This document shows, in pieces, positions 24,381-64,000 of a stretch of 64,000 bases of DNA. Origin of the DNA: Blastocladiella emersonii ATCC 22665 (lineage: Eukaryota > Fungi > Blastocladiomycota); assembly GCA_025594325.1 (NCBI GenBank), contig JANHCV010000014.1, positions 1,190,857 to 1,254,856 of the forward strand. The letters are read 5' to 3'. Numbering within the stretch: position 1 is the first letter of the stretch; the number at the start of each line of letters is the position of its first letter. The position numbers were made by a program, and so were the translations under genes. The notes under the pieces were generated by a model. The model saw only the letters and a program-made list of their open reading frames with translations. It was not told where the DNA came from and made no database searches.

Positions 24381-24396
24381 CGCCTGCCCAACACGG
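24381..24396 (+). repeat. Target site duplication, left copy (CGCCTGCCCAACACGG); right copy at 26142-26157
   Basis: Exact 16-bp direct repeat flanking the insertion. Confidence 0.93.
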
Positions 24397-32795: not shown

Positions 32796-32933
32796 CCTCC
32801 GGAAACGACTTCGCAATCCGGAACTTGCTCATCCATCGTATCCGATTCCAACGTCATGTTCGCACCGTATACCATTCTTCGTCGCGACAAAGGCACGGAG
32901 GACGACCAAGACTTGAGAATTGACTCGCTGAAC

Positions 32934-33040: not shown

Positions 33041-33062
33041 CCCTCTTTCTCACCCAAAGTAG

Positions 33063-33400
33063 GGCCCTTGTGCAGCTCGTTGTACGATAGAGCCTTACCA
33101 GCTTCGTATCGACGATCAAGTTGTCCCAACCATCAACATCCGCGAGGCCTTTAGCGCAGGCCTTCAAGTCAAGCAAATTCCGAATCAGGTGGGCCAGCTG
33201 AGGACGGCGTCGGGTCATCCCGCGTTGGAGCAGGCGTGTGATTCCCGACAATTGGTGTTCGTCTGTCAGCGCGCGTCTAGCCTGGCGGAGCCTCTTCTAT
33301 GCGGGCCGAGGCGCGCGCGATCGCGGTCGCGGTCGCCGCGGCACCACCGCGCTCGCGGACCCACATCTACTCTGGCTCTCAGGCTGTCATTGCATCCGAG
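33063..33400 (+). pseudogene. Degenerate retroelement fragments (post-RNase H linker-like piece, then an RNase H piece)
   Basis: 33245-33400 reads GVRLSARV*PGGASSMRAEARAIAVAVAAAPPRSRTHIYSGSQAVI, i.e. the RNase H RAE..AI and IY(S/T)DSQ motifs with D>G and a stop. 33090-33160 reads PYQLRIDDQVVPT, resembling family A HALYFDDVPVPT. Confidence 0.55.
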
Positions 33401-33884
33401 TCGGCCATCCGCGACCTATCGTTTCATTCCTCCTCTTCGTCTGATTCTGGCTTTCCTTCTTCTCTCAGTTCTACCAACGCATGGTCGCTTGCAGTGTGTG
33501 ACGCCGGCGTGGCCGTTTGCGCCGTGTGCGCAGCGCGTGGTGCGTCGGGCGCTGTGCGGTGTGCGCGGTGCGCGGTGCGCGGTGTGCATCCGTCAGCGGG
33601 TGAGTGGTTTCACGCCGAGGGAGAGCGGAGCTGCTCGTAACCCTCCCTGGCCCATCATCACGCAGGACTTGGAGCTGACAGCAGAGCCGGCAGCAAGGAG
33701 GAGACCAGCCGTATATTGCCTGACGAACACCTCTCAGACCACCTACGAGATAGATAAGAGCAACTGACTGGGAGCTGGCAGGCTGGCAGTCTGCCAGGCT
33801 GCCAGGGCTCATCATTCATTCCTTTGTTTGCAGGGACGGCAACCAGAGTGTGCGGGCCCACCATGGCTTGAGATGCGGCGTGGG

Positions 33885-33975
33885 TGGTTGGTTGGCTGGT
33901 TGGCTGGTTGGCTGGTTGGCTGGTTGGCTGGTTGGCTGGCAGGTTGGCTGGTTGGCTGGCAGGTTGGCAGGTCTG
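33885..33975 (+). repeat. (GGTTGGCT)n 8-mer tract with GGCAGGTT variants (unit 1; in every unit)
   Basis: Direct reading. Copy number varies among units (3, 5 or 7 uninterrupted copies). Confidence 0.95.
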
Positions 33976-34147
33976 GCAGGTTGTCTTTTGGCTCGTTGAT
34001 TGGACCGTTCGCTTTGCCGACGGGTTCAATAATTGGAGGAGGATCGAAGAGTTGGATAGTGGAGTGTGCGCAAAGTGGTAGATTTGGACATCTGCCGGTC
34101 TGGGTGCTTGCCCACCTGGACGTGAGGGTATTCGAAGATCTGAAGAT

Positions 34148-35110
34148 GGTTTGTTTGAGTACCATGACAATAATCAGCGTGGCGAGTTTGATACAACCGG
34201 AACATCAGATACTATGTTGTTGGTTCGATACTGTGATTTATAGGTCCTTGCCCACCAGATCATGGGGGGTGTGCGAAGATTTGAATATGGTTTTGTTTTG
34301 GTACTATGACGATTACCTACGTGGCTGGTTTACTATATTCCCATGGTCAGATAATTCGTTACGTCGATATTACGATTTATTGGTCCCCAACCAGCTGGAC
34401 ATGCAGGAAGTCAAAGACTTGAACATGGTTTTGTTTGAGTGCTCTGACAATTATCTGCGTGGCTTGTTTATTATATTCCCATGTTCAGATATTTTGTTGA
34501 GTCGATATTACGATTTATGGGTGCCTGGCTAGCTGGTCATGCGGGTGGTCAAGGATTTGAATATGGTTTTGTTTGAGTACCATGACAATTGTCGGAGTGG
34601 CTCGTTTACAATATTGCTCTGCCCAGATTCATGGTTGCTTCGATACTGTAATTTATAGGAGCCAGGCTAGCTGGACATGCGGGAAGTCAAAGATGTGAGT
34701 ACGGTTTTGTTTGAGTTCTCTGACAATTATCTGCGTGGCTTGTTTAGTATATTCCCATGTTCAGATATTTTGTTGAGTCGATATTACGATTTATGGGTCC
34801 CCAACGAGGTGGACATGCAGGAAGTCAACAACTTGAATATGGTTTTGTTTCGGTACTATGACAATTACGTACGTGGCTGGGTTACTATATTCCCATGGTC
34901 AGATATTTTGGTGGTTCGATACTGTGATTTATGGGTTCCTGGCTAGCTGGTCATGCGGGTGGTCAAGGATTTGAATATGGTTTTGTTTGAGTACCATGAG
35001 AATCATGTACGTGGCTGGTTTGGTACATCCCAAACATCGGCTAATTTGTTTCGTGCATGTTGCGATTTGTGGGGGGTCGGATTGGGCCGGACGTTGGCTG
35101 CAGCAAGGTC
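34148..35110. repeat. 138-bp AT-rich sub-repeat, ~7 diverged monomers (shown for unit 1; present in every unit)
   Basis: The GGTTTTGTTT landmark occurs at 34289, 34427, 34565, 34703, 34841 and 34979 (exact 138 spacing), with a degenerate copy at about 34148. Confidence 0.93.
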
Positions 35111-35214
35111 CCTCGGTCAAAATTCGACACAGTTGCTCCCCCTCCCTCTCTGTCATGCAGATAGTGGGTGGTGGCCGACCCATCCTGACCGCGCGCGGCC
35201 CGTATGAAGGTCCG

Positions 35215-35355
35215 CATCCACCCATCCATCCATCCATCCATTCATTCAACACTCACTCCATCACGCACCTTTTCACTTGTGTTGTTTGCCAGCCAGCTAG
35301 ACAGCTAGCCAGGTAGCCAGGTAGCCAGATCCTGCTGCTGCTACCTACCTACCCT
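35215..35355 (+). repeat. Cluster of C/A-rich microsatellites: (CATC)n, (CATT)n, (AGCCAGGT)n, (CTG)n, (CTAC)n (unit 1; in every unit)
   Basis: Direct reading. (CTCTGCAGC)n also occurs near 35735-35770 and (GGTGCGC)n near 33565. Confidence 0.9.
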
Positions 35356-35491
35356 GCCTCCAACAACGCCCGCCGCGTCATGAGCCAGGCAGGGCCGTGC
35401 CGCGACAAATGGCCGCGGCAGGCGTGTACGGTAATTGTACCTGTACCATACTTTCCATGGCCGCCCCGCCACCCTGACTTGGTCCTTGTAT

Positions 35492-35556
35492 GTCACTTGG
35501 TCACCTTGGTCACCTTGGTCACTTGGTCACTTGGTCACTTGGTCACTTGGTCACTT
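35492..35556 (+). repeat. (GGTCACTT)n / GGTCACCTT tract (unit 1; in every unit)
   Basis: Direct reading. Some units carry 16 bp more and/or a TTAGTCAC variant. Confidence 0.95.
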
Positions 35557-38500
35557 TGCGCGTGTGATGGTGGACGAGTGAGTCCAGGCATGCACGCACA
35601 AAAGCCCGCACGCCCACGTGTACTCCTGCCAGGAGCGCCTGGTGTGGGTCATTCACCCACCATTCAGTTAGTAGTCCCTAGCACTCCTTGGCCTTGGTAC
35701 TGTCTCCTGCAGGAGGAGCCCTGCCGCGTTAGCCCTCTGCAGCCCTCTGCAGCACTCTGCAGCACTCTGTCGCCGTACGGCCGCTGCCCTGTTTGCAACG
35801 TACGTTGGCCAGGGCGAGGCAGGTGCTGTGTTGTTGCTTGCCACTTGGCTGCCACCAAGTGCAGGCGCACCCATCGCAAAGCGTTCTGATGGACCCCGCG
35901 GCCATGAAAGCATGGGGCAGCACTGGACATGAATGAATCAAGCAATTGATGGCACTCGGAGGGCAGGCAGGCGCACCCGTTGGCGCAAGCAGACCTGGAG
36001 GATGGATCATTCTTGAGTTCAGGAAGCCTTGCCTGCCCGCCGTTCATGCGAGCGTGTGTGTGACACCAGCGTGGCCGTTTGCGCCGTGTGCGCAGCGCGT
36101 GGTGCGTCGGGCGCTGTGCGGTGTGCGCGGTGCGCGGTGCGCGGTGTGCATCCGTCAGCGGGTGAGTGGTTTCACGCCGAGGGAGAGCGGAGCTGCTCGT
36201 AACCCTCCCTGGCCCATCATCACGCAGGACTTGGAGCTGACAGCAGAGCCGGCAGCAAGGAGGAGACCAGCCGTATATTGCCTGACGAACACCTCTCAGA
36301 CCACCTACGAGATAGATAAGAGCAACTGACTGGGAGCTGGCAGGCTGGCAGTCTGCCAGGCTGCCAGGGCTCATCATTCATTCCTTTGTTTGCAGGGACG
36401 GCAACCAGAGTGTGCGGGCCCACCATGGCTTGAGATGCGGCGTGGGTGGTTGGTTGGCTGGTTGGCTGGTTGGCTGGTTGGCTGGCAGGTTGGCTGGTTG
36501 GCTGGCAGGTTGGCAGGTCTGGCAGGTTGTCTTTTGGCTCGTTGATTGGACCGTTCGCTTTGCCGACGGGTTCAATAATTGGAGGAGGATCGAAGAGTTG
36601 GATAGTGGAGTGTGCGCAAAGTGGTAGATTTGGACATCTGCCGGTCTGGGTGCTTGCCCACCTGGACGTGAGGGTATTCGAAGGTCTGAAGATGGTTTGT
36701 TTGAGTACCATGACAATAATCAGCGTGGCGAGTTTGATACAACCGGAACATCAGATACTATGTTGTTGGTTCGATACTGTGATTTATAGGTCCTTGCCCA
36801 CCAGATCATGGGGGGTGTGCGAAGATTTGAATATGGTTTTGTTTTGGTACTATGACGATTACCTACGTGGCTGGTTTACTATATTCCCATGGTCAGATAA
36901 TTTGTTACGTCGATATTACGATTTATTGGTCCCCAACCAGCTGGACATGCAGGAAGTCAAAGACTTGAACATGGTTTTGTTTGAGTGCTCTGACAATCAT
37001 CTGCGTGGCTTGTTTATTATATTCCCATGTTCAGATATTTTGTTGAGTCGATATTACGATTTATGGGTGCCTGGCTAGCTGGTCATGCGGGTGGTCAAGG
37101 ATTTGAATATGGTTTTGTTTGAGTACCATGACAATTGTCGGAGTGGCTCGTTTACAATATTGCTCTGCCCAGATTCATGGTTGCTTCGATACTGTAATTT
37201 ATAGGAGCCAGGCTAGCTGGACATGCGGGAAGTCAAAGATGTGAGTACGGTTTTGTTTGAGTTCTCTGACAATTATCTGCGTGGCTTGTTTAGTATATTC
37301 CCATGTTCAGATATTTTGTTGAGTCGATATTACGATTTATGGGTCCCCAACGAGGTGGACATGCAGGAAGTCAACAACTTGAATATGGTTTTGTTTCGGT
37401 ACTATGACAATTACGTACGTGGCTGGGTTACTATATTCCCATGGTCAGATATTTTGGTGGTTCGATACTGTGATTTATGGGTTCCTGGCTAGCTGGTCAT
37501 GCGGGTGGTCAAGGATTTGAATATGGTTTTGTTTGAGTACCATGAGAATCATGTACGTGGCTGGTTTGGTACATCCCAAACATCGGCTAATTTGTTTCGT
37601 GCATGTTGCGATTTGTGGGGGGTCGGATTGGGCCGGACGTTGGCTGCAGCAAGGTCCCTCGGTCAAAATTCGACACAGTTGCTCCCCCTCCCTCTCTGTC
37701 ATGCAGATAGTGGGTGGTGGCCGACCCATCCTGACCGCGCGCGGCCCGTATGAAGGTCCGCATCCACCCATCCATCCATCCATCCATTCATTCAACACTC
37801 ACTCCATCACGCACCTTTTCACTTGTGTTGTTTGCCAGCCAGCTAGACAGCTAGCCAGGTAGCCAGGTAGCCAGATCCTGCTGCTGCTACCTACCTACCC
37901 TGCCTCCAACAACGCCCGCCGCGTCATGAGCCAGGCAGGGCCGTGCCGCGACAAATGGCCGCGGCAGGCGTGTACGGTAATTGTACCTGTACCATACTTT
38001 CCATGGCCGCCCCGCCACCCTGACTTGGTCCTTGTATGTCACTTGGTCACCTTGGTCACCTTGGTCACTTGGTCACTTGGTCACTTGGTCACTTGGTCAC
38101 TTTGCGCGTGTGATGGTGGACGAGTGAGTCCAGGCATGCACGCACAAAAGCCCGCACGCCCACGTGTACTCCTGCCAGGAGCGCCTGGTGTGGGTCATTC
38201 ACCCACCATTCAGTTAGTAGTCCCTAGCACTCCTTGGCCTTGGTACTGTCTCCTGCAGGAGGAGCCCTGCCGCGTTAGCCCTCTGCAGCCCTCTGCAGCA
38301 CTCTGCAGCACTCTGTCGCCGTACGGCCGCTGCCCTGTTTGCAACGTACGTTGGCCAGGGCGAGGCAGGTGCTGTGTTGTTGCTTGCCACTTGGCTGCCA
38401 CCAAGTGCAGGCGCACCCATCGCAAAGCGTTCTGATGGACCCCGCGGCCATGAAAGCATGGGGCAGCACTGGACATGAATGAATCAAGCAATTGATGGCA

Positions 38501-41500
38501 CTCGGAGGGCAGGCAGGCGCACCCGTTGGCGCAAGCAGACCTGGAGGATGGATCATTCTTGAGTTCAGGAAGCCTTGCCTGCCCGCCGTTCATGCGAGCG
38601 TGTGTGTGACACCAGCGTGGCCGTTTGCGCCGTGTGCGCAGCGCGTGGTGCGTCGGGCGCTGTGCGGTGTGCGCGGTGCGCGGTGCGCGGTGTGCATCCG
38701 TCAGCGGGTGAGTGGTTTCACGCCGAGGGAGAGCGGAGCTGCTCGTAACCCTCCCTGGCCCATCATCACGCAGGACTTGGAGCTGACAGCAGAGCCGGCA
38801 GCAAGGAGGAGACCAGCCGTATATTGCCTGACGAACACCTCTCAGACCACCTACGAGATAGATAAGAGCAACTGACTGGGAGCTGGCAGGCTGGCAGTCT
38901 GCCAGGCTGCCAGGGCTCATCATTCATTCCTTTGTTTGCAGGGACGGCAACCAGAGTGTGCGGGCCCACCATGGCTTGAGATGCGGCGTGGGTGGTTGGT
39001 TGGCTGGTTGGCTGGTTGGCTGGTTGGCTGGTTGGCTGGTTGGCTGGCAGGTTGGCTGGTTGGCTGGCAGGTTGGCAGGTCTGGCAGGTTGTCTTTTGGC
39101 TCGTTGATTGGACCGTTCGCTTTGCCGACGGGTTCAATAATTGGAGGAGGATCGAAGAGTTGGATAGTGGAGTGTGCGCAAAGTGGTAGATTTGGACATC
39201 TGCCGGTCTGGGTGCTTGCCCACCTGGACGTGAGGGTATTCGAAGGTCTGAAGATGGTTTGTTTGAGTACCATGACAATAATCAGCGTGGCGAGTTTGAT
39301 ACAACCGGAACATCAGATACTATGTTGTTGGTTCGATACTGTGATTTATAGGTCCTTGCCCACCAGATCATGGGGGGTGTGCGAAGATTTGAATATGGTT
39401 TTGTTTTGGTACTATGACGATTACCTACGTGGCTGGTTTACTATATTCCCATGGTCAGATAATTTGTTACGTCGATATTACGATTTATTGGTCCCCAACC
39501 AGCTGGACATGCAGGAAGTCAAAGACTTGAACATGGTTTTGTTTGAGTGCTCTGACAATTATCTGCGTGGCTTGTTTATTATATTCCCATGTTCAGATAT
39601 TTTGTTGAGTCGATATTACGATTTATGGGTGCCTGGCTAGCTGGTCATGCGGGTGGTCAAGGATTTGAATATGGTTTTGTTTGAGTACCATGACAATTGT
39701 CGGAGTGGCTCGTTTACAATATTGCTCTGCCCAGATTCATGGTTGCTTCGATACTGTAATTTATAGGAGCCAGGCTAGCTGGACATGCGGGAAGTCAAAG
39801 ATGTGAGTACGGTTTTGTTTGAGTTCTCTGACAATTATCTGCGTGGCTTGTTTAGTATATTCCCATGTTCAGATATTTTGTTGAGTCGATATTACGATTT
39901 ATGGGTCCCCAACGAGGTGGACATGCAGGAAGTCAACAACTTGAATATGGTTTTGTTTGGGTACTATGACAATTACGTACGTGGCTGGGTTACTATATTC
40001 CCATGGTCAGATACTTTGGTGGTTCGATACTGTGATTTATGGGTTCCTGGCTAGCTGGTCATGCGGGTGGTCAAGGATTTGAATATGGTTTTGTTTGAGT
40101 ACCATGAGAATCATGTACGTGGCTGGTTTGGTACATCCCAAACATCGGCTAATTTGTTTCGTGCATGTTGCGATTTGTGGGGGGTCGGATTGGGCCGGAC
40201 GTTGGCTGCAGCAAGGTCCCTCGGTCAAAATTCGACACAGTTGCTCCCCCTCCCTCTCTGTCATGCAGATAGTGGGTGGTGGCCGACCCATCCTGACCGC
40301 GCGCGGCCCGTATGAAGGTCCGCATCCACCCATCCATCCATCCATCCATTCATTCAACACTCACTCCATCACGCACCTTTTCACTTGTGTTGTTTGCCAG
40401 CCAGCTAGACAGCTAGCCAGGTAGCCAGGTAGCCAGATCCTGCTGCTGCTACCTACCTACCCTGCCTCCAACAACGCCCGCCGCGTCATGAGCCAGGCAG
40501 GGCCGTGCCGCGACAAATGGCCGCGGCAGGCGTGTACGGTAATTGTACCTGTACCATACTTTCCATGGCCGCCCCGCCACCCTGACTTGGTCCTTGTATG
40601 TCACTTGGTCACCTTGGTCACCTTGGTCACTTGGTCACTTGGTCACTTGGTCACTTGGTCACTTTGCGCGTGTGATGGTGGACGAGTGAGTCCAGGCATG
40701 CACGCACAAAAGCCCGCACGCCCACGTGTACTCCTGCCAGGAGCGCCTGGTGTGGGTCATTCACCCACCATTCAGTTAGTAGTCCCTAGCACTCCTTGGC
40801 CTTGGTACTGTCTCCTGCAGGAGGAGCCCTGCCGCGTTAGCCCTCTGCAGCCCTCTGCAGCACTCTGCAGCACTCTGTCGCCGTACGGCCGCTGCCCTGT
40901 TTGCAACGTACGTTGGCCAGGGCGAGGCAGGTGCTGTGTTGTTGCTTGCCACTTGGCTGCCACCAAGTGCAGGCGCACCCATCGCAAAGCGTTCTGATGG
41001 ACCCCGCGGCCATGAAAGCATGGGGCAGCACTGGACATGAATGAATCAAGCAATTGATGGCACTCGGAGGGCAGGCAGGCGCACCCGTTGGCGCAAGCAG
41101 ACCTGGAGGATGGATCATTCTTGAGTTCAGGAAGCCTTGCCTGCCCGCCGTTCATGCGAGCGTGTGTGTGACACCAGCGTGGCCGTTTGCGCCGTGTGCG
41201 CAGCGCGTGGTGCGTCGGGCGCTGTGCGGTGTGCGCGGTGCGCGGTGCGCGGTGTGCATCCGTCAGCGGGTGAGTGGTTTCACGCCGAGGGAGAGCGGAG
41301 CTGCTCGTAACCCTCCCTGGCCCATCATCACGCAGGACTTGGAGCTGACAGCAGAGCCGGCAGCAAGGAGGAGACCAGCCGTATATTGCCTGACGAACAC
41401 CTCTCAGACCACCTACGAGATAGATAAGAGCAACTGACTGGGAGCTGGCAGGCTGGCAGTCTGCCAGGCTGCCAGGGCTCATCATTCATTCCTTTGTTTG

Positions 41501-44500
41501 CAGGGACGGCAACCAGAGTGTGCGGGCCCACCATGGCTTGAGATGCGGCGTGGGTGGTTGGTTGGCTGGTTGGCTGGTTGGCTGGTTGGCTGGTTGGCTG
41601 GTTGGCTGGCAGGTTGGCTGGTTGGCTGGCAGGTTGGCAGGTCTGGCAGGTTGTCTTTTGGCTCGTTGATTGGACCGTTCGCTTTGCCGACGGGTTCAAT
41701 AATTGGAGGAGGATCGAAGAGTTGGATAGTGGAGTGTGCGCAAAGTGGTAGATTTGGACATCTGCCGGTCTGGGTGCTTGCCCACCTGGACGTGAGGGTA
41801 TTCGAAGGTCTGAAGATGGTTTGTTTGAGTACCATGACAATAATCAGCGTGGCGAGTTTGATACAACCGGAACATCAGATACTATGTTGTTGGTTCGATA
41901 CTGTGATTTATAGGTCCTTGCCCACCAGATCATGGGGGGTGTGCGAAGATTTGAATATGGTTTTGTTTTGGTACTATGACGATTACCTACGTGGCTGGTT
42001 TACTATATTCCCATGGTCAGATAATTTGTTACGTCGATATTACGATTTATTGGTCCCCAACCAGCTGGACATGCAGGAAGTCAAAGACTTGAACATGGTT
42101 TTGTTTGAGTGCTCTGACAATTATCTGCGTGGCTTGTTTATTATATTCCCATGTTCAGATATTTTGTTGAGTCGATATTACGATTTATGGGTGCCTGGCT
42201 AGCTGGTCATGCGGGTGGTCAAGGATTTGAATATGGTTTTGTTTGAGTACCATGACAATTGTCGGAGTGGCTCGTTTACAATATTGCTCTGCCCAGATTC
42301 ATGGTTGCTTCGATACTGTAATTTATAGGAGCCAGGCTAGCTGGACATGCGGGAAGTCAAAGATGTGAGTACGGTTTTGTTTGAGTTCTCTGACAATTAT
42401 CTGCGTGGCTTGTTTAGTATATTCCCATGTTCAGATATTTTGTTGAGTCGATATTACGATTTATGGGTCCCCAACGAGGTGGACATGCAGGAAGTCAACA
42501 ACTTGAATATGGTTTTGTTTGGGTACTATGACAATTACGTACGTGGCTGGGTTACTATATTCCCATGGTCAGATATTTTGGTGGTTCGATACTGTGATTT
42601 ATGGGTTCCTGGCTAGCTGGTCATGCGGGTGGTCAAGGATTTGAATATGGTTTTGTTTGAGTACCATGAGAATCATGTACGTGGCTGGTTTGGTACATCC
42701 CAAACATCGGCTAATTTGTTTCGTGCATGTTGCGATTTGTGGGGGGTCGGATTGGGCCGGACGTTGGCTGCAGCAAGGTCCCTCGGTCAAAATTCGACAC
42801 AGTTGCTCCCCCTCCCTCTCTGTCATGCAGATAGTGGGTGGTGGCCGACCCATCCTGACCGCGCGCGGCCCGTATGAAGGTCCGCATCCACCCATCCATC
42901 CATCCATCCATTCATTCAACACTCACTCCATCACGCACCTTTTCACTTGTGTTGTTTGCCAGCCAGCTAGACAGCTAGCCAGGTAGCCAGGTAGCCAGAT
43001 CCTGCTGCTGCTACCTACCTACCCTGCCTCCAACAACGCCCGCCGCGTCATGAGCCAGGCAGGGCCGTGCCGCGACAAATGGCCGCGGCAGGCGTGTACG
43101 GTAATTGTACCTGTACCATACTTTCCATGGCCGCCCCGCCACCCTGACTTGGTCCTTGTATGTCACTTGGTCACCTTGGTCACCTTGGTCACTTGGTCAC
43201 TTGGTCACTTGGTCACTTGGTCACTTTGCGCGTGTGATGGTGGACGAGTGAGTCCAGGCATGCACGCACAAAAGCCCGCACGCCCACGTGTACTCCTGCC
43301 AGGAGCGCCTGGTGTGGGTCATTCACCCACCATTCAGTTAGTAGTCCCTAGCACTCCTTGGCCTTGGTACTGTCTCCTGCAGGAGGAGCCCTGCCGCGTT
43401 AGCCCTCTGCAGCCCTCTGCAGCACTCTGCAGCACTCTGTCGCCGTACGGCCGCTGCCCTGTTTGCAACGTACGTTGGCCAGGGCGAGGCAGGTGCTGTG
43501 TTGTTGCTTGCCACTTGGCTGCCACCAAGTGCAGGCGCACCCATCGCAAAGCGTTCTGATGGACCCCGCGGCCATGAAAGCATGGGGCAGCACTGGACAT
43601 GAATGAATCAAGCAATTGATGGCACTCGGAGGGCAGGCAGGCGCACCCGTTGGCGCAAGCAGACCTGGAGGATGGATCATTCTTGAGTTCAGGAAGCCTT
43701 GCCTGCCCGCCGTTCATGCGAGCGTGTGTGTGACACCAGCGTGGCCGTTTGCGCCGTGTGCGCAGCGCGTGGTGCGTCGGGCGCTGTGCGGTGTGCGCGG
43801 TGCGCGGTGCGCGGTGTGCATCCGTCAGCGGGTGAGTGGTTTCACGCCGAGGGAGAGCGGAGCTGCTCGTAACCCTCCCTGGCCCATCATCACGCAGGAC
43901 TTGGAGCTGACAGCAGAGCCGGCAGCAAGGAGGAGACCAGCCGTATATTGCCTGACGAACACCTCTCAGACCACCTACGAGATAGATAAGAGCAACTGAC
44001 TGGGAGCTGGCAGGCTGGCAGTCTGCCAGGCTGCCAGGGCTCATCATTCATTCCTTTGTTTGCAGGGACGGCAACCAGAGTGTGCGGGCCCACCATGGCT
44101 TGAGATGCGGCGTGGGTGGTTGGTTGGCTGGTTGGCTGGTTGGCTGGTTGGCTGGTTGGCTGGTTGGCTGGCAGGTTGGCTGGTTGGCTGGCAGGTTGGC
44201 AGGTCTGGCAGGTTGTCTTTTGGCTCGTTGATTGGACCGTTCGCTTTGCCGACGGGTTCAATAATTGGAGGAGGATCGAAGAGTTGGATAGTGGAGTGTG
44301 CGCAAAGTGGTAGATTTGGACATCTGCCGGTCTGGGTGCTTGCCCACCTGGACGTGAGGGTATTCGAAGGTCTGAAGATGGTTTGTTTGAGTACCATGAC
44401 AATAATCAGCGTGGCGAGTTTGATACAACCGGAACATCAGATACTATGTTGTTGGTTCGATACTGTGATTTATAGGTCCTTGCCCACCAGATCATGGGGG

Positions 44501-53500: not shown

Positions 53501-56500
53501 TCACTTGGTCACTTGGTCACTTTGCGCGTGTGATGGTGGACGAGTGAGTCCAGGCATGCACGCACAAAAGCCCGCACGCCCACGTGTACTCCTGCCAGGA
53601 GCGCCTGGTGTGGGTCATTCACCCACCATTCAGTTAGTAGTCCCTAGCACTCCTTGGCCTTGGTACTGTCTCCTGCAGGAGGAGCCCTGCCGCGTTAGCC
53701 CTCTGCAGCCCTCTGCAGCACTCTGCAGCACTCTGTCGCCGTACGGCCGCTGCCCTGTTTGCAACGTACGTTGGCCAGGGCGAGGCAGGTGCTGTGTTGT
53801 TGCTTGCCACTTGGCTGCCACCAAGTGCAGGCGCACCCATCGCAAAGCGTTCTGATGGACCCCGCGGCCATGAAAGCATGGGGCAGCACTGGACATGAAT
53901 GAATCAAGCAATTGATGGCACTCGGAGGGCAGGCAGGCGCACCCGTTGGCGCAAGCAGACCTGGAGGATGGATCATTCTTGAGTTCAGGAAGCCTTGCCT
54001 GCCCGCCGTTCATGCGAGCGTGTGTGTGACACCAGCGTGGCCGTTTGCGCCGTGTGCGCAGCGCGTGGTGCGTCGGGCGCTGTGCGGTGTGCGCGGTGCG
54101 CGGTGCGCGGTGTGCATCCGTCAGCGGGTGAGTGGTTTCACGCCGAGGGAGAGCGGAGCTGCTCGTAACCCTCCCTGGCCCATCATCACGCAGGACTTGG
54201 AGCTGACAGCAGAGCCGGCAGCAAGGAGGAGACCAGCCGTATATTGCCTGACGAACACCTCTCAGACCACCTACGAGATAGATAAGAGCAACTGACTGGG
54301 AGCTGGCAGGCTGGCAGTCTGCCAGGCTGCCAGGGCTCATCATTCATTCCTTTGTTTGCAGGGACGGCAACCAGAGTGTGCGGGCCCACCATGGCTTGAG
54401 ATGCGGCGTGGGTGGTTGGTTGGCTGGTTGGCTGGTTGGCTGGTTGGCTGGTTGGCTGGTTGGCTGGTTGGCTGGTTGGCTGGCAGGTTGGCAGGTCTGG
54501 CAGGTTGTCTTTTGGCTCGTTGATTGGACCGTTCGCTTTGCCGACGGGTTCAATAATTGGAGGAGGATCGAAGCGTTGGATAGTGGAGTGTGCGCAAAGT
54601 GGTAGATTTGGACATCTGCCGGTCTGGGTGCTTGCCCACCTGGACGTGAGGGTATTCGAAGATCTGAAGATGGTTTGTTTGAGTACCATGACAATAATCA
54701 GCGTGGCGAGTTTGATACAACCGGAACATCAGATACTATGTTGTTGGTTCGATACTGTGATTTATAGGTCCTTGCCCACCAGATCATGGGGGGTGTGCGA
54801 AGATTTGAATATGGTTTTGTTTTGGTACTATGACGATTACCTACGTGGCTGGTTTACTATATTCCCATGGTCAGATAATTTGTTACGTCGATATTACGAT
54901 TTATTGGTCCCCAACCAGCTGGACATGCAGGAAGTCAAAGACTTGAACATGGTTTTGTTTGAGTGCTCTGACAATTATCTGCGTGGCTTGTTTATTATAT
55001 TCCCATGTTCAGATATTTTGTTGAGTCGATATTACGATTTATGGGTGCCTGGCTAGCTGGTCATGCGGGTGGTCAAGGATTTGAATATGGTTTTGTTTGA
55101 GTACCATGACAATTGTCGGAGTGGCTCGTTTACAATATTGCTCTGCCCAGATTCATGGTTGCTTCGATACTGTAATTTATAGGAGCCAGGCTAGCTGGAC
55201 ATGCGGGAAGTCAAAGATGTGAGTACGGTTTTGTTTGAGTTCTCTGACAATTATCTGCGTGGCTTGTTTAGTATATTCCCATGTTCAGATATTTTGTTGA
55301 GTCGATATTACGATTTATGGGTCCCCAACGAGGTGGACATGCAGGAAGTCAACAACTTGAATATGGTTTTGTTTGGGTACTATGACAATTACGTACGTGG
55401 CTGGGTTACTATATTCCCATGGTCAGATATTTTGGTGGTTCGATACTGTGATTTATGGGTTCCTGGCTAGCTGGTCATGCGGGTGGTCAAGGATTTGAAT
55501 ATGGTTTTGTTTGAGTACCATGAGAATCATGTACGTGGCTGGTTTGGTACATCCCAAACATCGGCTAATTTGTTTCGTGCATGTTGCGATTTGTGGGGGG
55601 TCGGATTGGGCCGGACGTTGGCTGCAGCAAGGTCCCTCGGTCAAAATTCGACACAGTTGCTCCCCCTCCCTCTCTGTCATGCAGATAGTGGGTGGTGGCC
55701 GACCCATCCTGACCGCGCGCGGCCCGTATGAAGGTCCGCATCCACCCATCCATCCATCCATCCATTCATTCAACACTCACTCCATCACGCACCTTTTCAC
55801 TTGTGTTGTTTGCCAGCCAGCTAGACAGCTAGCCAGGTAGCCAGGTAGCCAGATCCTGCTGCTGCTACCTACCTACCCTGCCTCCAACAACGCCCGCCGC
55901 GTCATGAGCCAGGCAGGGCCGTGCCGCGACAAATGGCCGCGGCAGGCGTGTACGGTAATTGTACCTGTACCATACTTTCCATGGCCGCCCCGCCACCCTG
56001 ACTTGGTCCTTGTATGTCACTTGGTCACCTTGGTCACCTTAGTCACTTGGTCACTTGGTCACTTGGTCACTTGGTCACTTTGCGCGTGTGATGGTGGACG
56101 AGTGAGTCCAGGCATGCACGCACAAAAGCCCGCACGCCCACGTGTACTCCTGCCAGGAGCGCCTGGTGTGGGTCATTCACCCACCATTCAGTTAGTAGTC
56201 CCTAGCACTCCTTGGCCTTGGTACTGTCTCCTGCAGGAGGAGCCCTGCCGCGTTAGCCCTCTGCAGCCCTCTGCAGCACTCTGCAGCACTCTGTCGCCGT
56301 ACGGCCGCTGCCCTGTTTGCAACGTACGTTGGCCAGGGCGAGGCAGGTGCTGTGTTGTTGCTTGCCACTTGGCTGCCACCAAGTGCAGGCGCACCCATCG
56401 CAAAGCGTTCTGATGGACCCCGCGGCCATGAAAGCATGGGGCAGCACTGGACATGAATGAATCAAGCAATTGATGGCACTCGGAGGGCAGGCAGGCGCAC

Positions 56501-59500
56501 CCGTTGGCGCAAGCAGACCTGGAGGATGGATCATTCTTGAGTTCAGGAAGCCTTGCCTGCCCGCCGTTCATGCGAGCGTGTGTGTGACACCAGCGTGGCC
56601 GTTTGCGCCGTGTGCGCAGCGCGTGGTGCGTCGGGCGCTGTGCGGTGTGCGCGGTGCGCGGTGCGCGGTGTGCATCCGTCAGCGGGTGAGTGGTTTCACG
56701 CCGAGGGAGAGCGGAGCTGCTCGTAACCCTCCCTGGCCCATCATCACGCAGGACTTGGAGCTGACAGCAGAGCCGGCAGCAAGGAGGAGACCAGCCGTAT
56801 ATTGCCTGACGAACACCTCTCAGACCACCTACGAGATAGATAAGAGCAACTGACTGGGAGCTGGCAGGCTGGCAGTCTGCCAGGCTGCCAGGGCTCATCA
56901 TTCATTCCTTTGTTTGCAGGGACGGCAACCAGAGTGTGCGGGCCCACCATGGCTTGAGATGCGGCGTGGGTGGTTGGTTGGCTGGTTGGCTGGTTGGCTG
57001 GTTGGCTGGTTGGCTGGTTGGCTGGTTGGCTGGTTGGCTGGCAGGTTGGCAGGTCTGGCAGGTTGTCTTTTGGCTCGTTGATTGGACCGTTCGCTTTGCC
57101 GACGGGTTCAATAATTGGAGGAGGATCGAAGCGTTGGATAGTGGAGTGTGCGCAAAGTGGTAGATTTGGACATCTGCCGGTCTGGGTGCTTGCCCACCTG
57201 GACGTGAGGGTATTCGAAGATCTGAAGATGGTTTGTTTGAGTACCATGACAATAATCAGCGTGGCGAGTTTGATACAACCGGAACATCAGATACTATGTT
57301 GTTGGTTCGATACTGTGATTTATAGGTCCTTGCCCACCAGATCATGGGGGGTGTGCGAAGATTTGAATATGGTTTCGTTTTGGTACTATGACGATTACCT
57401 ACGTGGCTGGTTTACTATATTCCCATGGTCAGATAATTTGTTACGTCGATATTACGATTTATTGGTCCCCAACCAGCTGGACATGCAGGAAGTCAAAGAC
57501 TTGAACATGGTTTTGTTTGAGTGCTCTGACAATCATCTGCGTGGCTTGTTTATTATATTCCCATGTTCAGATATTTTGTTGAGTCGATATTACGATTTAT
57601 GGGTGCCTGGCTAGCTGGTCATGCGGGTGGTCAAGGATTTGAATATGGTTTTGTTTGAGTACCATGACAATTGTCGGAGTGGCTCGTTTACAATATTGCT
57701 CTGCCCAGATTCATGGTTGCTTCGATACTGTAATTTATAGGAGCCAGGCTAGCTGGACATGCGGGAAGTCAAAGATGTGAGTACGGTTTTGTTTGAGTTC
57801 TCTGACAATTATCTGCGTGGCTTGTTTAGTATATTCCCATGTTCAGATATTTTGTTGAGTCGATATTACGATTTATGGGTCCCCAACGAGGTGGACATGC
57901 AGGAAGTCAACAACTTGAATATGGTTTTGTTTGGGTACTATGACAATTACGTACGTGGCTGGGTTACTATATTCCCATGGTCAGATATTTTGGTGGTTCG
58001 ATACTGTGATTTATGGGTTCCTGGCTAGCTGGTCATGCGGGTGGTCAAGGATTTGAATATGGTTTTGTTTGAGTACCATGAGAATCATGTACGTGGCTGG
58101 TTTGGTACATCCCAAACATCGGCTAATTTGTTTCGTGCATGTTGCGATTTGTGGGGGGTCGGATTGGGCCGGACGTTGGCTGCAGCAAGGTCCCTCGGTC
58201 AAAATTCGACACAGTTGCTCCCCCTCCCTCTCTGTCATGCAGATAGTGGGTGGTGGCCGACCCATCCTGACCGCGCGCGGCCCGTATGAAGGTCCGCATC
58301 CACCCATCCATCCATCCATCCATTCATTCAACACTCACTCCATCACGCACCTTTTCACTTGTGTTGTTTGCCAGCCAGCTAGACAGCTAGCCAGGTAGCC
58401 AGGTAGCCAGATCCTGCTGCTGCTACCTACCTACCCTGCCTCCAACAACGCCCGCCGCGTCATGAGCCAGGCAGGGCCGTGCCGCGACAAATGGCCGCGG
58501 CAGGCGTGTACGGTAATTGTACCTGTACCATACTTTCCATGGCCGCCCCGCCACCCTGACTTGGTCCTTGTATGTCACTTGGTCACCTTGGTCACCTTAG
58601 TCACTTGGTCACTTGGTCACTTGGTCACTTGGTCACTTGGTCACTTGGTCACTTTGCGCGTGTGATGGTGGACGAGTGAGTCCAGGCATGCACGCACAAA
58701 AGCCCGCACGCCCACGTGTACTCCTGCCAGGAGCGCCTGGTGTGGGTCATTCACCCACCATTCAGTTAGTAGTCCCTAGCACTCCTTGGCCTTGGTACTG
58801 TCTCCTGCAGGAGGAGCCCTGCCGCGTTAGCCCTCTGCAGCCCTCTGCAGCACTCTGCAGCACTCTGTCGCCGTACGGCCGCTGCCCTGTTTGCAACGTA
58901 CGTTGGCCAGGGCGAGGCAGGTGCTGTGTTGTTGCTTGCCACTTGGCTGCCACCAAGTGCAGGCGCACCCATCGCAAAGCGTTCTGATGGACCCCGCGGC
59001 CATGAAAGCATGGGGCAGCACTGGACATGAATGAATCAAGCAATTGATGGCACTCGGAGGGCAGGCAGGCGCACCCGTTGGCGCAAGCAGACCTGGAGGA
59101 TGGATCATTCTTGAGTTCAGGAAGCCTTGCCTGCCCGCCGTTCATGCGAGCGTGTGTGTGACACCAGCGTGGCCGTTTGCGCCGTGTGCGCAGCGCGTGG
59201 TGCGTCGGGCGCTGTGCGGTGTGCGCGGTGCGCGGTGCGCGGTGTGCATCCGTCAGCGGGTGAGTGGTTTCACGCCGAGGGAGAGCGGAGCTGCTCGTAA
59301 CCCTCCCTGGCCCATCATCACGCAGGACTTGGAGCTGACAGCAGAGCCGGCAGCAAGGAGGAGACCAGCCGTATATTGCCTGACGAACACCTCTCAGACC
59401 ACCTACGAGATAGATAAGAGCAACTGACTGGGAGCTGGCAGGCTGGCAGTCTGCCAGGCTGCCAGGGCTCATCATTCATTCCTTTGTTTGCAGGGACGGC

Positions 59501-62500
59501 AACCAGAGTGTGCGGGCCCACCATGGCTTGAGATGCGGCGTGGGTGGTTGGTTGGCTGGTTGGCTGGTTGGCTGGTTGGCTGGTTGGCTGGTTGGCTGGT
59601 TGGCTGGTTGGCTGGCAGGTTGGCAGGTCTGGCAGGTTGTCTTTTGGCTCGTTGATTGGACCGTTCGCTTTGCCGACGGGTTCAATAATTGGAGGAGGAT
59701 CGAAGCGTTGGATAGTGGAGTGTGCGCAAAGTGGTAGATTTGGACATCTGCCGGTCTGGGTGCTTGCCCACCTGGACGTGAGGGTATTCGAAGATCTGAA
59801 GATGGTTTGTTTGAGTACCATGACAATAATCAGCGTGGCGAGTTTGATACAACCGGAACATCAGATACTATGTTGTTGGTTCGATACTGTGATTTATAGG
59901 TCCTTGCCCACCAGATCATGGGGGGTGTGCGAAGATTTGAATATGGTTTTGTTTTGGTACTATGACGATTACCTACGTGGCTGGTTTACTATATTCCCAT
60001 GGTCAGATAATTTGTTACGTCGATATTACGATTTATTGGTCCCCAACCAGCTGGACATGCAGGAAGTCAAAGACTTGAACATGGTTTTGTTTGAGTGCTC
60101 TGACAATTATCTGCGTGGCTTGTTTATTATATTCCCATGTTCAGATATTTTGTTGAGTCGATATTACGATTTATGGGTGCCTGGCTAGCTGGTCATGCGG
60201 GTGGTCAAGGATTTGAATATGGTTTTGTTTGAGTACCATGACAATTGTCGGAGTGGCTCGTTTACAATATTGCTCTGCCCAGATTCATGGTTGCTTCGAT
60301 ACTGTAATTTATAGGAGCCAGGCTAGCTGGACATGCGGGAAGTCAAAGATGTGAGTACGGTTTTGTTTGAGTTCTCTGACAATTATCTGCGTGGCTTGTT
60401 TAGTATATTCCCATGTTCAGATATTTTGTTGAGTCGATATTACGATTTATGGGTCCCCAACGAGGTGGACATGCAGGAAGTCAACAACTTGAATATGGTT
60501 TTGTTTGGGTACTATGACAATTACGTACGTGGCTGGGTTACTATATTCCCATGGTCAGATATTTTGGTGGTTCGATACTGTGATTTATGGGTTCCTGGCT
60601 AGCTGGTCATGCGGGTGGTCAAGGATTTGAATATGGTTTTGTTTGAGTACCATGAGAATCATGTACGTGGCTGGTTTGGTACATCCCAAACATCGGCTAA
60701 TTTGTTTCGTGCATGTTGCGATTTGTGGGGGGTCGGATTGGGCCGGACGTTGGCTGCAGCAAGGTCCCTCGGTCAAAATTCGACACAGTTGCTCCCCCTC
60801 CCTCTCTGTCATGCAGATAGTGGGTGGTGGCCGACCCATCCTGACCGCGCGCGGCCCGTATGAAGGTCCGCATCCACCCATCCATCCATCCATCCATTCA
60901 TTCAACACTCACTCCATCACGCACCTTTTCACTTGTGTTGTTTGCCAGCCAGCTAGACAGCTAGCCAGGTAGCCAGGTAGCCAGATCCTGCTGCTGCTAC
61001 CTACCTACCCTGCCTCCAACAACGCCCGCCGCGTCATGAGCCAGGCAGGGCCGTGCCGCGACAAATGGCCGCGGCAGGCGTGTACGGTAATTGTACCTGT
61101 ACCATACTTTCCATGGCCGCCCCGCCACCCTGACTTGGTCCTTGTATGTCACTTGGTCACCTTGGTCACCTTAGTCACTTGGTCACTTGGTCACTTGGTC
61201 ACTTGGTCACTTGGTCACTTGGTCACTTTGCGCGTGTGATGGTGGACGAGTGAGTCCAGGCATGCACGCACAAAAGCCCGCACGCCCACGTGTACTCCTG
61301 CCAGGAGCGCCTGGTGTGGGTCATTCACCCACCATTCAGTTAGTAGTCCCTAGCACTCCTTGGCCTTGGTACTGTCTCCTGCAGGAGGAGCCCTGCCGCG
61401 TTAGCCCTCTGCAGCCCTCTGCAGCACTCTGCAGCACTCTGTCGCCGTACGGCCGCTGCCCTGTTTGCAACGTACGTTGGCCAGGGCGAGGCAGGTGCTG
61501 TGTTGTTGCTTGCCACTTGGCTGCCACCAAGTGCAGGCGCACCCATCGCAAAGCGTTCTGATGGACCCCGCGGCCATGAAAGCATGGGGCAGCACTGGAC
61601 ATGAATGAATCAAGCAATTGATGGCACTCGGAGGGCAGGCAGGCGCACCCGTTGGCGCAAGCAGACCTGGAGGATGGATCATTCTTGAGTTCAGGAAGCC
61701 TTGCCTGCCCGCCGTTCATGCGAGCGTGTGTGTGACACCAGCGTGGCCGTTTGCGCCGTGTGCGCAGCGCGTGGTGCGTCGGGCGCTGTGCGGTGTGCGC
61801 GGTGCGCGGTGCGCGGTGTGCATCCGTCAGCGGGTGAGTGGTTTCACGCCGAGGGAGAGCGGAGCTGCTCGTAACCCTCCCTGGCCCATCATCACGCAGG
61901 ACTTGGAGCTGACAGCAGAGCCGGCAGCAAGGAGGAGACCAGCCGTATATTGCCTGACGAACACCTCTCAGACCACCTACGAGATAGATAAGAGCAACTG
62001 ACTGGGAGCTGGCAGGCTGGCAGTCTGCCAGGCTGCCAGGGCTCATCATTCATTCCTTTGTTTGCAGGGACGGCAACCAGAGTGTGCGGGCCCACCATGG
62101 CTTGAGATGCGGCGTGGGTGGTTGGTTGGCTGGTTGGCTGGTTGGCTGGTTGGCTGGTTGGCTGGTTGGCTGGTTGGCTGGTTGGCTGGCAGGTTGGCAG
62201 GTCTGGCAGGTTGTCTTTTGGCTCGTTGATTGGACCGTTCGCTTTGCCGACGGGTTCAATAATTGGAGGAGGATCGAAGCGTTGGATAGTGGAGTGTGCG
62301 CAAAGTGGTAGATTTGGACATCTGCCGGTCTGGGTGCTTGCCCACCTGGACGTGAGGGTATTCGAAGATCTGAAGATGGTTTGTTTGAGTACCATGACAA
62401 TAATCAGCGTGGCGAGTTTGATACAACCGGAACATCAGATACTATGTTGTTGGTTCGATACTGTGATTTATAGGTCCTTGCCCACCAGATCATGGGGGGT

Positions 62501-64000
62501 GTGCGAAGATTTGAATATGGTTTTGTTTTGGTACTATGACGATTACCTACGTGGCTGGTTTACTATATTCCCATGGTCAGATAATTTGTTACGTCGATAT
62601 TACGATTTATTGGTCCCCAACCAGCTGGACATGCAGGAAGTCAAAGACTTGAACATGGTTTTGTTTGAGTGCTCTGACAATCATCTGCGTGGCTTGTTTA
62701 TTATATTCCCATGTTCAGATATTTTGTTGAGTCGATATTACGATTTATGGGTGCCTGGCTAGCTGGTCATGCGGGTGGTCAAGGATTTGAATATGGTTTT
62801 GTTTGAGTACCATGACAATTGTCGGAGTGGCTCGTTTACAATATTGCTCTGCCCAGATTCATGGTTGCTTCGATACTGTAATTTATAGGAGCCAGGCTAG
62901 CTGGACATGCGGGAAGTCAAAGATGTGAGTACGGTTTTGTTTGAGTTCTCTGACAATTATCTGCGTGGCTTGTTTAGTATATTCCCATGTTCAGATATTT
63001 TGTTGAGTCGATATTACGATTTATGGGTCCCCAACGAGGTGGACATGCAGGAAGTCAACAACTTGAATATGGTTTTGTTTGGGTACTATGACAATTACGT
63101 ACGTGGCTGGGTTACTATATTCCCATGGTCAGATATTTTGGTGGTTCGATACTGTGATTTATGGGTTCCTGGCTAGCTGGTCATGCGGGTGGTCAAGGAT
63201 TTGAATATGGTTTTGTTTGAGTACCATGAGAATCATGTACGTGGCTGGTTTGGTACATCCCAAACATCGGCTAATTTGTTTCGTGCATGTTGCGATTTGT
63301 GGGGGGTCGGATTGGGCCGGACGTTGGCTGCAGCAAGGTCCCTCGGTCAAAATTCGACACAGTTGCTCCCCCTCCCTCTCTGTCATGCAGATAGTGGGTG
63401 GTGGCCGACCCATCCTGACCGCGCGCGGCCCGTATGAAGGTCCGCATCCACCCATCCATCCATCCATCCATTCATTCAACACTCACTCCATCACGCACCT
63501 TTTCACTTGTGTTGTTTGCCAGCCAGCTAGACAGCTAGCCAGGTAGCCAGGTAGCCAGATCCTGCTGCTGCTACCTACCTACCCTGCCTCCAACAACGCC
63601 CGCCGCGTCATGAGCCAGGCAGGGCCGTGCCGCGACAAATGGCCGCGGCAGGCGTGTACGGTAATTGTACCTGTACCATACTTTCCATGGCCGCCCCGCC
63701 ACCCTGACTTGGTCCTTGTATGTCACTTGGTCACCTTGGTCACCTTAGTCACTTGGTCACTTGGTCACTTGGTCACTTGGTCACTTGGTCACTTGGTCAC
63801 TTTGCGCGTGTGATGGTGGACGAGTGAGTCCAGGCATGCACGCACAAAAGCCCGCACGCCCACGTGTACTCCTGCCAGGAGCGCCTGGTGTGGGTCATTC
63901 ACCCACCATTCAGTTAGTAGTCCCTAGCACTCCTTGGCCTTGGTACTGTCTCCTGCAGGAGGAGCCCTGCCGCGTTAGCCCTCTGCAGCCCTCTGCAGCA

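Follow-up and report, generated by a model that had tools for sequence, protein, structure and literature searches.

Chromosome-specific macrosatellite arrays as candidate satellite-type regional centromeres in Blastocladiella emersonii

The stretch of Blastocladiella emersonii DNA analyzed here (64,000 nucleotides, hereafter the window) passes from ordinary genes into a long tandem array, and the question it raises is whether this array is the edge of a centromere, as a first-pass annotation had proposed. The features of the window are listed in Table 1. Tandem Repeats Finder and a repeat finder placed 12 unit starts between positions 33494 and 61728, spaced 2546–2578 bp apart, and the array runs up to base 64000 of the window, which is the last base of contig C6. 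Alignment of the units revealed 0–8 substitutions per 2.56 kb (99.7–100% identity), with the edge unit being the most diverged. Differences in unit length were found as 16-bp steps within 8-bp microsatellites, and are accounted for by the two alternative copy numbers of (GTCACTTG)n. The extent and unit lengths proposed for the array are confirmed. The window thus has the extended run of near-identical, non-coding tandem units that characterizes a satellite-type regional centromere.

Table 1. Positions of features in the window; features within the repeat are given for the reference unit.
Feature	Position	Strand	Remarks
Bromodomain protein gene	157-1437	+	Ordinary gene-bearing arm (157..16129)
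Squalene epoxidase gene	1661-3076	-	Ordinary gene-bearing arm (157..16129)
RICTOR fragment	10163-11209	-	Ordinary gene-bearing arm (157..16129)
Nup84/107 gene	14819-16129	+	Ordinary gene-bearing arm (157..16129)
XL poly(A) retroposon, 1.74 kb	24399..26141	-	3' portion of a LINE; distant relative of the intact LINE at 27524..32794
Host DNA	26142..27523		Weak leucine-rich-repeat matches
Intact non-LTR retrotransposon (LINE), 5.27 kb	27524..32794	+	1682-aa open frame with RVT_1 domain
Junction segment, 561 bp	32933..33493		No repeat found; between transposon belt and first unit
Macrosatellite array	33494..64000	+	11.9 head-to-tail units of 2546-2578 bp, reaching the end of contig C6
Reference unit	41164..43725	+	2562 bp, GC 0.54; first 128 bases at 5' end 72% GC
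(GTGCGCG)n microsatellite	41196..41254	+	
(TGGTTGGC)n microsatellite	41551..41668	+	Length differs from unit to unit
Block of seven 138-bp monomers	41764..42729	+	Unit positions 601-1566; no indels between monomers
(AGCCAGCT)n microsatellite	42961..42998	+	
(GTCACTTG)n microsatellite	43162..43226	+	7.9 or 9.9 copies
(AGCACTCTGC)n microsatellite	43401..43439	+	
17-mer GCAGGCGCACCCGTTGG	43636..43652	+	Once per unit; conserved in 7/7 families; used for genome-wide unit count

The internal organization of the unit agrees in most respects with what had been read from the sequence initially. The monomers and microsatellites that had been described were confirmed, the unit having seven diverged, indel-free 138-bp monomers and five microsatellites. 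The monomer block has a GC content of 0.43, compared to 0.62–0.67 in its flanks. Sequence similarity between monomers is just about 77%, while the 138-bp period is strictly kept; it is retained in all six of the families for which the monomer block was sampled, with 0–1% indels in full-length calls. A super-period of 413 bp, corresponding to three monomers, was found only in families A and B. The dyads that had been noted correspond to three short imperfect inverted repeats per unit, which are too weak to be kept as a feature. The description of the unit as a higher-order repeat does not hold in the strict sense derived from alpha-satellite, by which the whole unit consists of diverged head-to-tail monomers, because the monomers make up just 38% of the unit (966 of 2562 bp) and the remainder is without the 138-bp period.

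We considered whether the array could be a tandem cluster of protein genes or of genes for an unknown RNA, or else an artefact of assembly. Open reading frames reach up to 237 aa in each unit, the length of the monomer (138 bp) is a whole number of codons, 46, and just 4 stops occur among the 321 codons of one reading frame through the monomer block, all of which would fit a gene cluster. Against this, substitutions sorted by codon phase were not in excess at the third position, whether within the unit (362/379/451, the third position of the open frame having the fewest) or in comparisons between families (530/454/552), so that the open frame lacks the phase bias of purifying selection. A Pfam search of the longest open frames of the unit identified no family. 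Nor does each unit carry a recognizable RNA gene, as would an rDNA, 5S, or other RNA-gene array: a search of the window against Rfam yielded no family reaching the gathering score, a single unit had no match even at E<=1, and a tRNA search found no tRNA gene. These results uphold the non-coding nature ascribed to the array. As for an artefact, a 567-bp unitig from public reads (positions 32970–33536, 0 differences) bridges the boundary between flank and array in two runs, and array unitigs are 46–200 times deeper than the junction unitig. Such a depth is not a copy number, but it hints that this family may have 50–200 units, compared with 16 in the assembly. Junction and units are therefore both represented in read-derived unitigs, and the far greater abundance of the unit's words than of the junction's indicates that the array was not inflated by assembly. 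We consider it very unlikely that the array is a gene cluster or an artefact. A search for public sequencing runs turned up DNA runs and no RNA run. The four runs all come from one sample, probably the one used for the assembly itself, and this counts against a centromere reading.

The first-pass annotation had raised a subtelomeric location as an alternative, meaning that the array would be a satellite at a chromosome end whose telomere is unassembled, and the extension of the array to the very end of its contig is compatible with such a location. However, the array continues as 4 units on contig C21 (C21:1732048-1742282, reverse strand), the end of which is 100% identical to the window unit over 2806 bp and of matching polarity, as expected for one broken array. 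The same was observed for 6 of 6 contig pairs, both halves in each case having the polarity of one continuous array; if polarity were random, such agreement would have a probability of 1/64. The starts of C6 and C21 have subtelomere-type elements in common with the telomere-capped start of C2. This presence of subtelomere-like DNA at both outer ends indicates that C6 and reversed C21 form one chromosome of about 3.0 Mb, with the array lying approximately 1.22 Mb and 1.73 Mb from the chromosome ends. What the window shows is the left half of this array, which lies in mid-chromosome, approximately 41% of the way along. Three scaffolds have end-type repeats at both outer ends (the start of C2 being the sole true telomere among them), and their arrays lie at approximately 41%, 47%, and 59% of scaffold length. 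The telomere repeat (CCTAAA)n is present only at the starts of C2 and C11, neither of which resembles the unit, and no telomere repeat was found at array-bearing contig ends. A 3-kb element common to four contig ends was ruled out as rDNA. The array is thus chromosome-internal and no array adjoins a telomere; we reject the subtelomeric alternative for the window array and regard it as extremely improbable.

A genome-wide count based on the 17-mer GCAGGCGCACCCGTTGG demonstrated that the array is not confined to a single locus. All 315 genome matches fall within seven families on 12 contigs (C2, 19 matches; C5, 66; C4, 14; C7, 29; C6, 11; C21, 4; C10, 17; C11, 8; C17, 36; C19, 11; C20, 4; C9, 96). 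Six families are located on pairs of contig ends, and the seventh is on C17, with its partner half absent from the assembly. The contigs pair as C6 with C21, C2 with C5, C7 with C4, C11 with C10, C20 with C19, and C9 with C16. Unit identity is 96–100% within a family (the value of 96% being due to a 358-bp remnant on C16, with 99–100% otherwise) and 76–90% between families. Seven chromosome-scale scaffolds therefore each contain one internal, gene-free array of relatively AT-rich composite units, which are near-identical within a chromosome and diverged between chromosomes. The composite blocks are 2.5–4.3 kb in length and the assembled arrays span 41–276 kb. Contigs C1, C3, C8, and C15 (about 9.8 Mb) contain no array; each is missing a telomere at one end at least, and they could join array-bearing scaffolds. 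Contig-end bookkeeping fits seven chromosomes, and a minimum of six was inferred in the genome paper (PMC9730499); there could also be an eighth chromosome without an array. The array-free contigs and the unassembled partner half of C17 count against the centromere reading. When metagenomes were scanned for exact matches to a 22-mer conserved in the monomer, no relatives were found outside the B. emersonii genome; four AT-rich metagenome contigs that matched the 22-mer had no similarity beyond the seed and were dismissed as chance matches.

We also examined the DNA that leads up to the array, which had been described as a gradient from housekeeping genes to young LINE insertions and debris. 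Genes do occupy the first 16 kb of the window and are followed at a distance by a retroposon and a LINE, but a stretch of about 8 kb of single-copy DNA (16.2–24.4 kb) intervenes, and the transposon belt on the window side is only about 9 kb with little debris. The XL retroposon copy is marked by a T-run (24399–24406) and by an 18-bp target-site duplication with 1 mismatch (24381–24398 and 26142–26159). The intact LINE has a poly(A) tail (32780–32794) and a perfect 18-bp target-site duplication (27506–27523 and 32795–32812), and the empty site of its insertion is still present on C21. No other full-length copy was found, and 3 of approximately 9 young copies of this element are near arrays. The host DNA at 26142..27523, together with XL and positions 32795–32932, is duplicated at 98% on C21, where the copy directly abuts the array's far edge. 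Between the intact LINE and the first unit lies 0.7 kb, made up of 0.14 kb of host DNA and the 561-bp junction segment. This retrotransposon-rich flank is much narrower than in the pericentromeres of plants and animals. This narrow belt, and the presence of genes within approximately 17 kb of the window array, count against the centromere reading.

Retroelements at or within the array, a further feature of satellite-type regional centromeres, were found at the other assembled arrays as well as in the window. XL is present at 13 of 13 assembled array edges, within 0–7.3 kb, in young copies that are 91–97% alike between chromosomes, and in families D and G older XL copies (72–80% alike) form part of the repeat unit itself. 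Flanks on the other chromosomes are known from match coordinates and 3-kb contig ends. An ESM Atlas search with the 332-aa XL frame returned only unnamed clusters, with a weak zf-RVT hint below the level of recognition.

Genes were found for CENP-C (80.6 bits; C16:633010-633261) and for an H3 variant resembling CenH3 (C15:561588-562077), proteins that may act at the arrays. A histone-fold match in a long open frame on C21 was rejected as CenH3; from its sequence motifs we take it to be of the NF-YC/HAP5 type. Judged by position and structure alone, the seven arrays are probably satellite-type regional centromeres. The first-pass annotation had named three sequence-level outcomes that would speak against a centromere, namely a single locus, a position only next to telomeres, and an assembly artefact; the array proved to be multi-locus, non-telomeric, and read-backed, so each of these checks favours the centromere reading. 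What falls away from the original proposal is the strict higher-order label and the broad retrotransposon-rich flank. In the mechanism we propose, a portion of each array would carry CenH3 nucleosomes and CENP-C, the likeliest site being the AT-rich monomer block with its strict 138-bp period. Within an array, gene conversion and unequal exchange would homogenize the units and purge insertions from the core, and for this reason retroposons would survive only at the edges.

The main competing explanation is that the arrays are non-centromeric heterochromatin, knob-like macrosatellites derived from one ancestral locus that by chance occupy a single site on most chromosomes, with the true centromeres being short or unique sequences elsewhere. 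Macrosatellites with kilobase units do occur away from centromeres in other organisms, and several large contigs of B. emersonii have no array. Among fungi, the majority of known centromeres are of a non-satellite kind (PMC13682844, PMC7385547). On the other hand, one internal array per scaffold, chromosome-specific homogenization, and a retroposon recurring at the edges form the pattern expected of centromeres, and no other one-per-chromosome candidate is known. We therefore view heterochromatin of this type as a serious but rather unlikely explanation.

The classes of fungal centromere described are point, small regional, inverted-repeat, transposon-rich, and mosaic. According to a 2026 study of fungal centromere prediction, satellite higher-order arrays are absent from them (PMC13682844). 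The kind proposed here is listed for fungi neither there nor in PMC7385547, which counts against the centromere reading. Our literature searches found no work naming centromeres, Blastocladiomycota, and satellite together, and nothing relevant on the karyotype or centromeres of Blastocladiella. Like the transposon-rich or AT-rich regional centromeres of Dikarya (Neurospora, Cryptococcus), which occur once per chromosome, the arrays, one on each of seven scaffolds, are gene-free, GC-poorer than the genome, and tens to hundreds of kilobases in length, whereas the Dikarya centromeres consist of degenerate interspersed transposons rather than homogenized tandem units (PMC7385547). The mosaic centromeres of Mucor circinelloides, with pericentric Grem-LINE1, offer a parallel in another early-diverging fungus: a LINE lineage is found almost only beside the centromere candidates, and scaffolds break at such regions in both assemblies. 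Mucor, however, is without CENP-A, and its core is short and AT-rich, bears a conserved motif, and is no satellite array (bioRxiv 10.1101/706580), whereas Blastocladiella has a CenH3-like gene and, as the candidate core, a large tandem array.

Satellite arrays outside the fungi provide closer structural parallels. Human alpha-satellite centromeres likewise have chromosome-specific, kilobase-scale units that are near-identical within and diverged between chromosomes, a sub-repeat of roughly nucleosome size, and edges at which the most diverged units and LINE insertions are found. The B. emersonii unit differs in being only partly monomeric (38%), with a monomer of 138 bp rather than 171 bp and the rest made up of unrelated sequence and microsatellites; its assembled arrays measure 41–276 kb rather than megabases. 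The human macrosatellites D4Z4 and DXZ4 are similar in having highly alike units of 2.5–4 kb in arrays of a heterochromatin type, but they occur at one or a few loci, as opposed to one array on each of seven scaffolds, and D4Z4 carries a gene while none is detectable here. In the satellite centromeres of plants (Arabidopsis CEN178 with ATHILA), one retroelement lineage also inserts repeatedly into the arrays and old insertions can be amplified within the repeat; the B. emersonii arrays differ in that the element is a non-LTR poly(A) retroposon instead of an LTR element and the unit is a composite of 2.5–4.3 kb (PMC10984392).

The evidence leans slightly toward a more specific reading, namely that the arrays are bound by CenH3 and would be the first satellite-based, chromosome-specifically homogenized centromeres to be described in fungi, with a strictly length-conserved 138-bp sub-repeat and a lineage of non-LTR retroposons that has homed to them repeatedly and in part become incorporated in the unit. 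B. emersonii is a model organism that can be cultured, its genome is approximately 33 Mb, and the array sequences are family-specific and uniquely mappable, so the centromere question can be tested directly. The arrays also explain the breakage of the genome into contig pairs and can guide scaffolding. If they bind CenH3, an early-diverging lineage of fungi would possess satellite centromeres that are homogenized chromosome by chromosome and targeted by homing retroelements, and satellite centromeres might then be ancestral in opisthokonts rather than inventions of animals and plants only.

We compared the terminal 3 kb at either end of each of the 21 contigs (C1–C21) of the assembly with the macrosatellite unit and among themselves. 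The assembly totals 32.65 Mb (N50 2.02 Mb, L50 6). Its contig statistics and telomere repeat match those published for Blastocladiella emersonii ATCC 22665, with 21 contigs, N50 2.02 Mb, L50 6, and the telomere motif AAACCT; the same paper gives a size of 34.27 Mb and no fewer than six chromosomes (PMC9730499). The repeat was found at 13 contig ends and resolved into seven families of arrays (A–G), between which identity is 76–90%. A 17-mer that every family carries once per unit had 315 exact matches genome-wide (63 forward and 252 reverse), each of which was assigned to a contig by family-specific extensions of the word, the C7 count being obtained by subtraction. The matches numbered 19 on C2, 66 on C5, 14 on C4, 29 on C7, 11 on C6, 4 on C21, 17 on C10, 8 on C11, 36 on C17, 11 on C19, 4 on C20, and 96 on C9; by this exact-match count, no units with the 17-mer were present on C1, C3, C8, C12–C15, or C18. 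Approximately 0.98 Mb of arrays is assembled, and each segment touches a contig end. The repeat whose array the first-pass annotation read as the edge of a centromere is thus not confined to a single locus, there being one array in each of seven scaffolds of contigs joined at the arrays.

Array families and other located features of the window and contigs
Feature	Location	Strand	Unit length	Identity of halves	Other
Family A	C2 end, C5 start		3124 or 3148 bp	99%	
Family B	C7 end, C4 start		2766 or 2790 bp	100%	
Family C (window's array)	C6 end, C21 end (C21:1732048-1742282)		2546-2578 bp	100% over 2806 bp	30.5 kb assembled on C6, 10.2 kb on C21
Family D	C11 end, C10 end		3.3 kb	100%	
Family E	C20 end, C19 start		2635 or 3049 bp	100%	
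Family F	C9 end, C16 start		variable	96%	276 kb assembled
Family G	C17 end		4.1-4.3 kb		partner half not assembled
XL poly(A) retroposon	window 24399-26141	minus			18-bp target-site duplication
Intact LINE	window 27524-32794				1682-aa frame, RVT_1 reverse-transcriptase domain, poly(A) tail, perfect 18-bp target-site duplication
XL plus flank copy	C21:1728938-1732047				beside C21 array
Paralogous segments	window 16940-17990, C21:1701500-1702543				73% alike
Inverted family E unit	C20:1786398				single, at array edge
CENP-C cupin domain	C16:633010-633261				80.6 bits
H3 variant (candidate CenH3)	C15:561588-562077				two introns
Second diverged H3-like gene	C1:3640470-3640884				
U4 snRNA gene	C7:1525-1679				at C7 start
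Three tRNA genes	C1:1-3000				

The polarity of the two halves was that of one array broken by the assembler in all six contig pairs, for which the chance under random polarity is 1/64; a common telomere-directed polarity would predict disagreement in all six. Telomere repeats, (CCTAAA)n, were found at two contig ends, the starts of C2 and C11, and neither of these has similarity to the unit. The window covers C6:1190857-1254856, and the array reaches its last base, 64000, where C6 itself ends. The start of C6 carries elements that are 87–95% alike to those at the start of C21 and the ends of C5, C19, and C3, and a 97% element is common to C21 start, C5 end, and the telomere-capped C2 start. 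Because of these outer-end elements related to a telomere-capped end, C6 plus reversed C21 is modeled as one chromosome, about 2.96 Mb long without the array, that carries subtelomere-type DNA at each end and has the array at approximately 41% of its length. End-type repeats are also found at both ends of C2+C5 and C20+C19, with arrays at approximately 59% and 47%, only the C2 start being telomere-capped. A subtelomeric satellite, the alternative raised in the first-pass annotation, is largely excluded by the telomere-capped ends, the pair polarity, and the outer ends of C6 and C21; the array is chromosome-internal. The tally of contig ends, open and end-type, agrees with seven chromosomes; there may instead be eight, one of them without an array.

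Several other features were observed at contig ends. The small contigs C12 and C13 each start with 3 kb that recurs, as an exact reverse complement, in their final 3 kb; each contig may be palindromic or a hairpin artefact. Breaks within long (CTG)n/(CAG)n runs (C10 start, both C13 ends, and C18 start) suggest a C10-(C13)-C18 join, by which the family D array would lie within a roughly 5-Mb chromosome. A 3-kb terminal element, 87–98% alike, is common to the ends of C4, C15, and C16 and the start of C20; at three of these ends, those with matching terminal 60 bases, it stops at the same base, and the C20 start is the reverse complement. This element contains no rRNA or telomere repeat and may be the border of an unassembled repeat. 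The tRNA and U4 snRNA genes at the starts of C1 and C7 are listed in the table.

Within the window, Tandem Repeats Finder and a repeat finder placed 12 unit starts from 33494 to 61728 at a spacing of 2546–2578 bp, and alignment of the units in the window revealed 0–8 substitutions per 2.56 kb, bearing out their near identity. Unit length varies in 16-bp steps located within 8-bp microsatellites, and the most diverged unit is the first, at the array edge. Each unit has a 5' part of 72% GC, five microsatellites, and a run of seven indel-free 138-bp monomers spanning unit positions 601–1566, this block having a GC content of 0.43 compared to 0.62–0.67 in its flanks. The 138-bp period was found in six of six sampled families with 0–1% indels (full-length calls), and the monomer sequences are about 77% alike. 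The nested monomers described at first pass are present, but the strict higher-order-repeat label fails because they account for only 966 bp of the 2562-bp unit, which makes it a composite macrosatellite containing an internal sub-repeat. The microsatellites noted at first pass are likewise present, but the dyads amount to just three short, imperfect inverted repeats per unit.

The monomer length equals 46 codons, and one reading frame through the monomer block is interrupted by just four stops. Substitutions by phase numbered 362, 379, and 451 among monomers, with the fewest at the third position of the open frame, and 530, 454, and 552 between families; neither set of phase counts hints at a protein under purifying selection. 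No Pfam family matched the longest ORFs, Rfam gave no family for the whole window at gathering score and no match for one unit at E<=1, and a tRNA search found none. A gene cluster is thus largely excluded, and the array is non-coding as first described.

Four DNA runs from one sample, in the form of read-derived contigs, bear on whether the array is an assembly artefact. A 567-bp unitig (32970-33536) spans the flank-array boundary in two runs with 0 differences. Junction unitig depth was 135, 7.6, and 3.9 in runs X1, X2, and X4, and exact array unitigs had depths of 25000 (possibly a ceiling), 945–1511, and 178–598, respectively. The array unitigs are thus 46–200 times deeper than the junction unitig, with 16 units in the assembly, these depths not being copy numbers. 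An artefact is largely excluded by these data: the array is not inflated by assembly and is probably under-assembled.

The left flank passes from genes for a bromodomain protein, squalene epoxidase, RICTOR, and Nup84/107 (window 0–16 kb) through single-copy DNA (16.2–24.4 kb) to the XL retroposon and the LINE. The empty site of the LINE is preserved on C21. Because it is intact and the assembly yielded no other full-length copy, this LINE is possibly still active; 5'-truncated copies of 95–98% identity occur close to the arrays of C9 and C20 and at five further sites. XL is weakly similar, by translated comparison, to the C-terminal part of the neighboring LINE's protein. Young XL copies, 91–97% alike, lie 0–7.3 kb from all 13 assembled array edges, with only two comparable copies elsewhere among the candidates scored. 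The XL T-run directly adjoins satellite in the sequence of C21 and C16, and match coordinates suggest the same on C4, C5, C11, C19, and C17. Older XL-like pieces, 72–80% alike, are found inside the repeat unit of families D and G, and therefore the XL lineage entered the arrays on more than one occasion. The last, truncated unit on C21 is adjoined by a 98% copy of XL with 1.5 kb of upstream flank; the homology of this copy begins exactly at the poly(A) end and it has no target-site duplication, which would fit retroposition carrying upstream sequence and joining to a broken array edge. Five XL copies share a 5' end near 1750 bp, which suggests that the element is non-autonomous or that one insertion was copied. 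At the C20 array edge, XL copies lie between the inverted family E unit and other units. Paralogous segments lie on either side of the family C array, at distances of about 16 kb (left) and 30 kb (right), in like orientation once C21 is flipped, and may represent an old duplication across the array.

A single match to the CENP-C cupin domain was found, along with a diverged, intron-containing H3 variant whose best solved relative is an H3/CENP-A chimera. The aligned stretch of the variant is four residues longer than H3, and we take the extra residues to lie in loop 1, making this gene a candidate CenH3. Together, the two genes point to a likely CenH3-based kinetochore in B. emersonii. In the second diverged H3-like gene, a very long insertion separates helices, and a TAG lies in frame upstream.

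The words 'centromere' and 'satellite' are absent from the genome paper (PMC9730499), and 'satellite' is absent from reviews of fungal genome architecture (PMC7385547) and kinetochore diversity (PMC9089191) and from a Mucor centromere preprint (bioRxiv 10.1101/706580). In the literature searched, no paper joined centromere, Blastocladiomycota, and satellite; a 2026 methods paper describes higher-order satellite arrays as lacking in fungal centromeres (PMC13682844). Among fungi, the pericentric Grem-LINE1 of Mucor comes closest as a parallel. All seven arrays are chromosome-internal, without recognizable genes, lower in GC than the surrounding genome, and present once per scaffold. The arrays are also homogenized within and diverged between chromosomes, with a 138-bp sub-repeat of conserved length and a recurrent retroposon lineage at their edges. 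The main rival reading, non-centromeric heterochromatin occurring once per chromosome, we regard as rather unlikely. Because the combined traits of the arrays match the pattern of satellite regional centromeres, all seven probably serve as the regional centromeres of B. emersonii.
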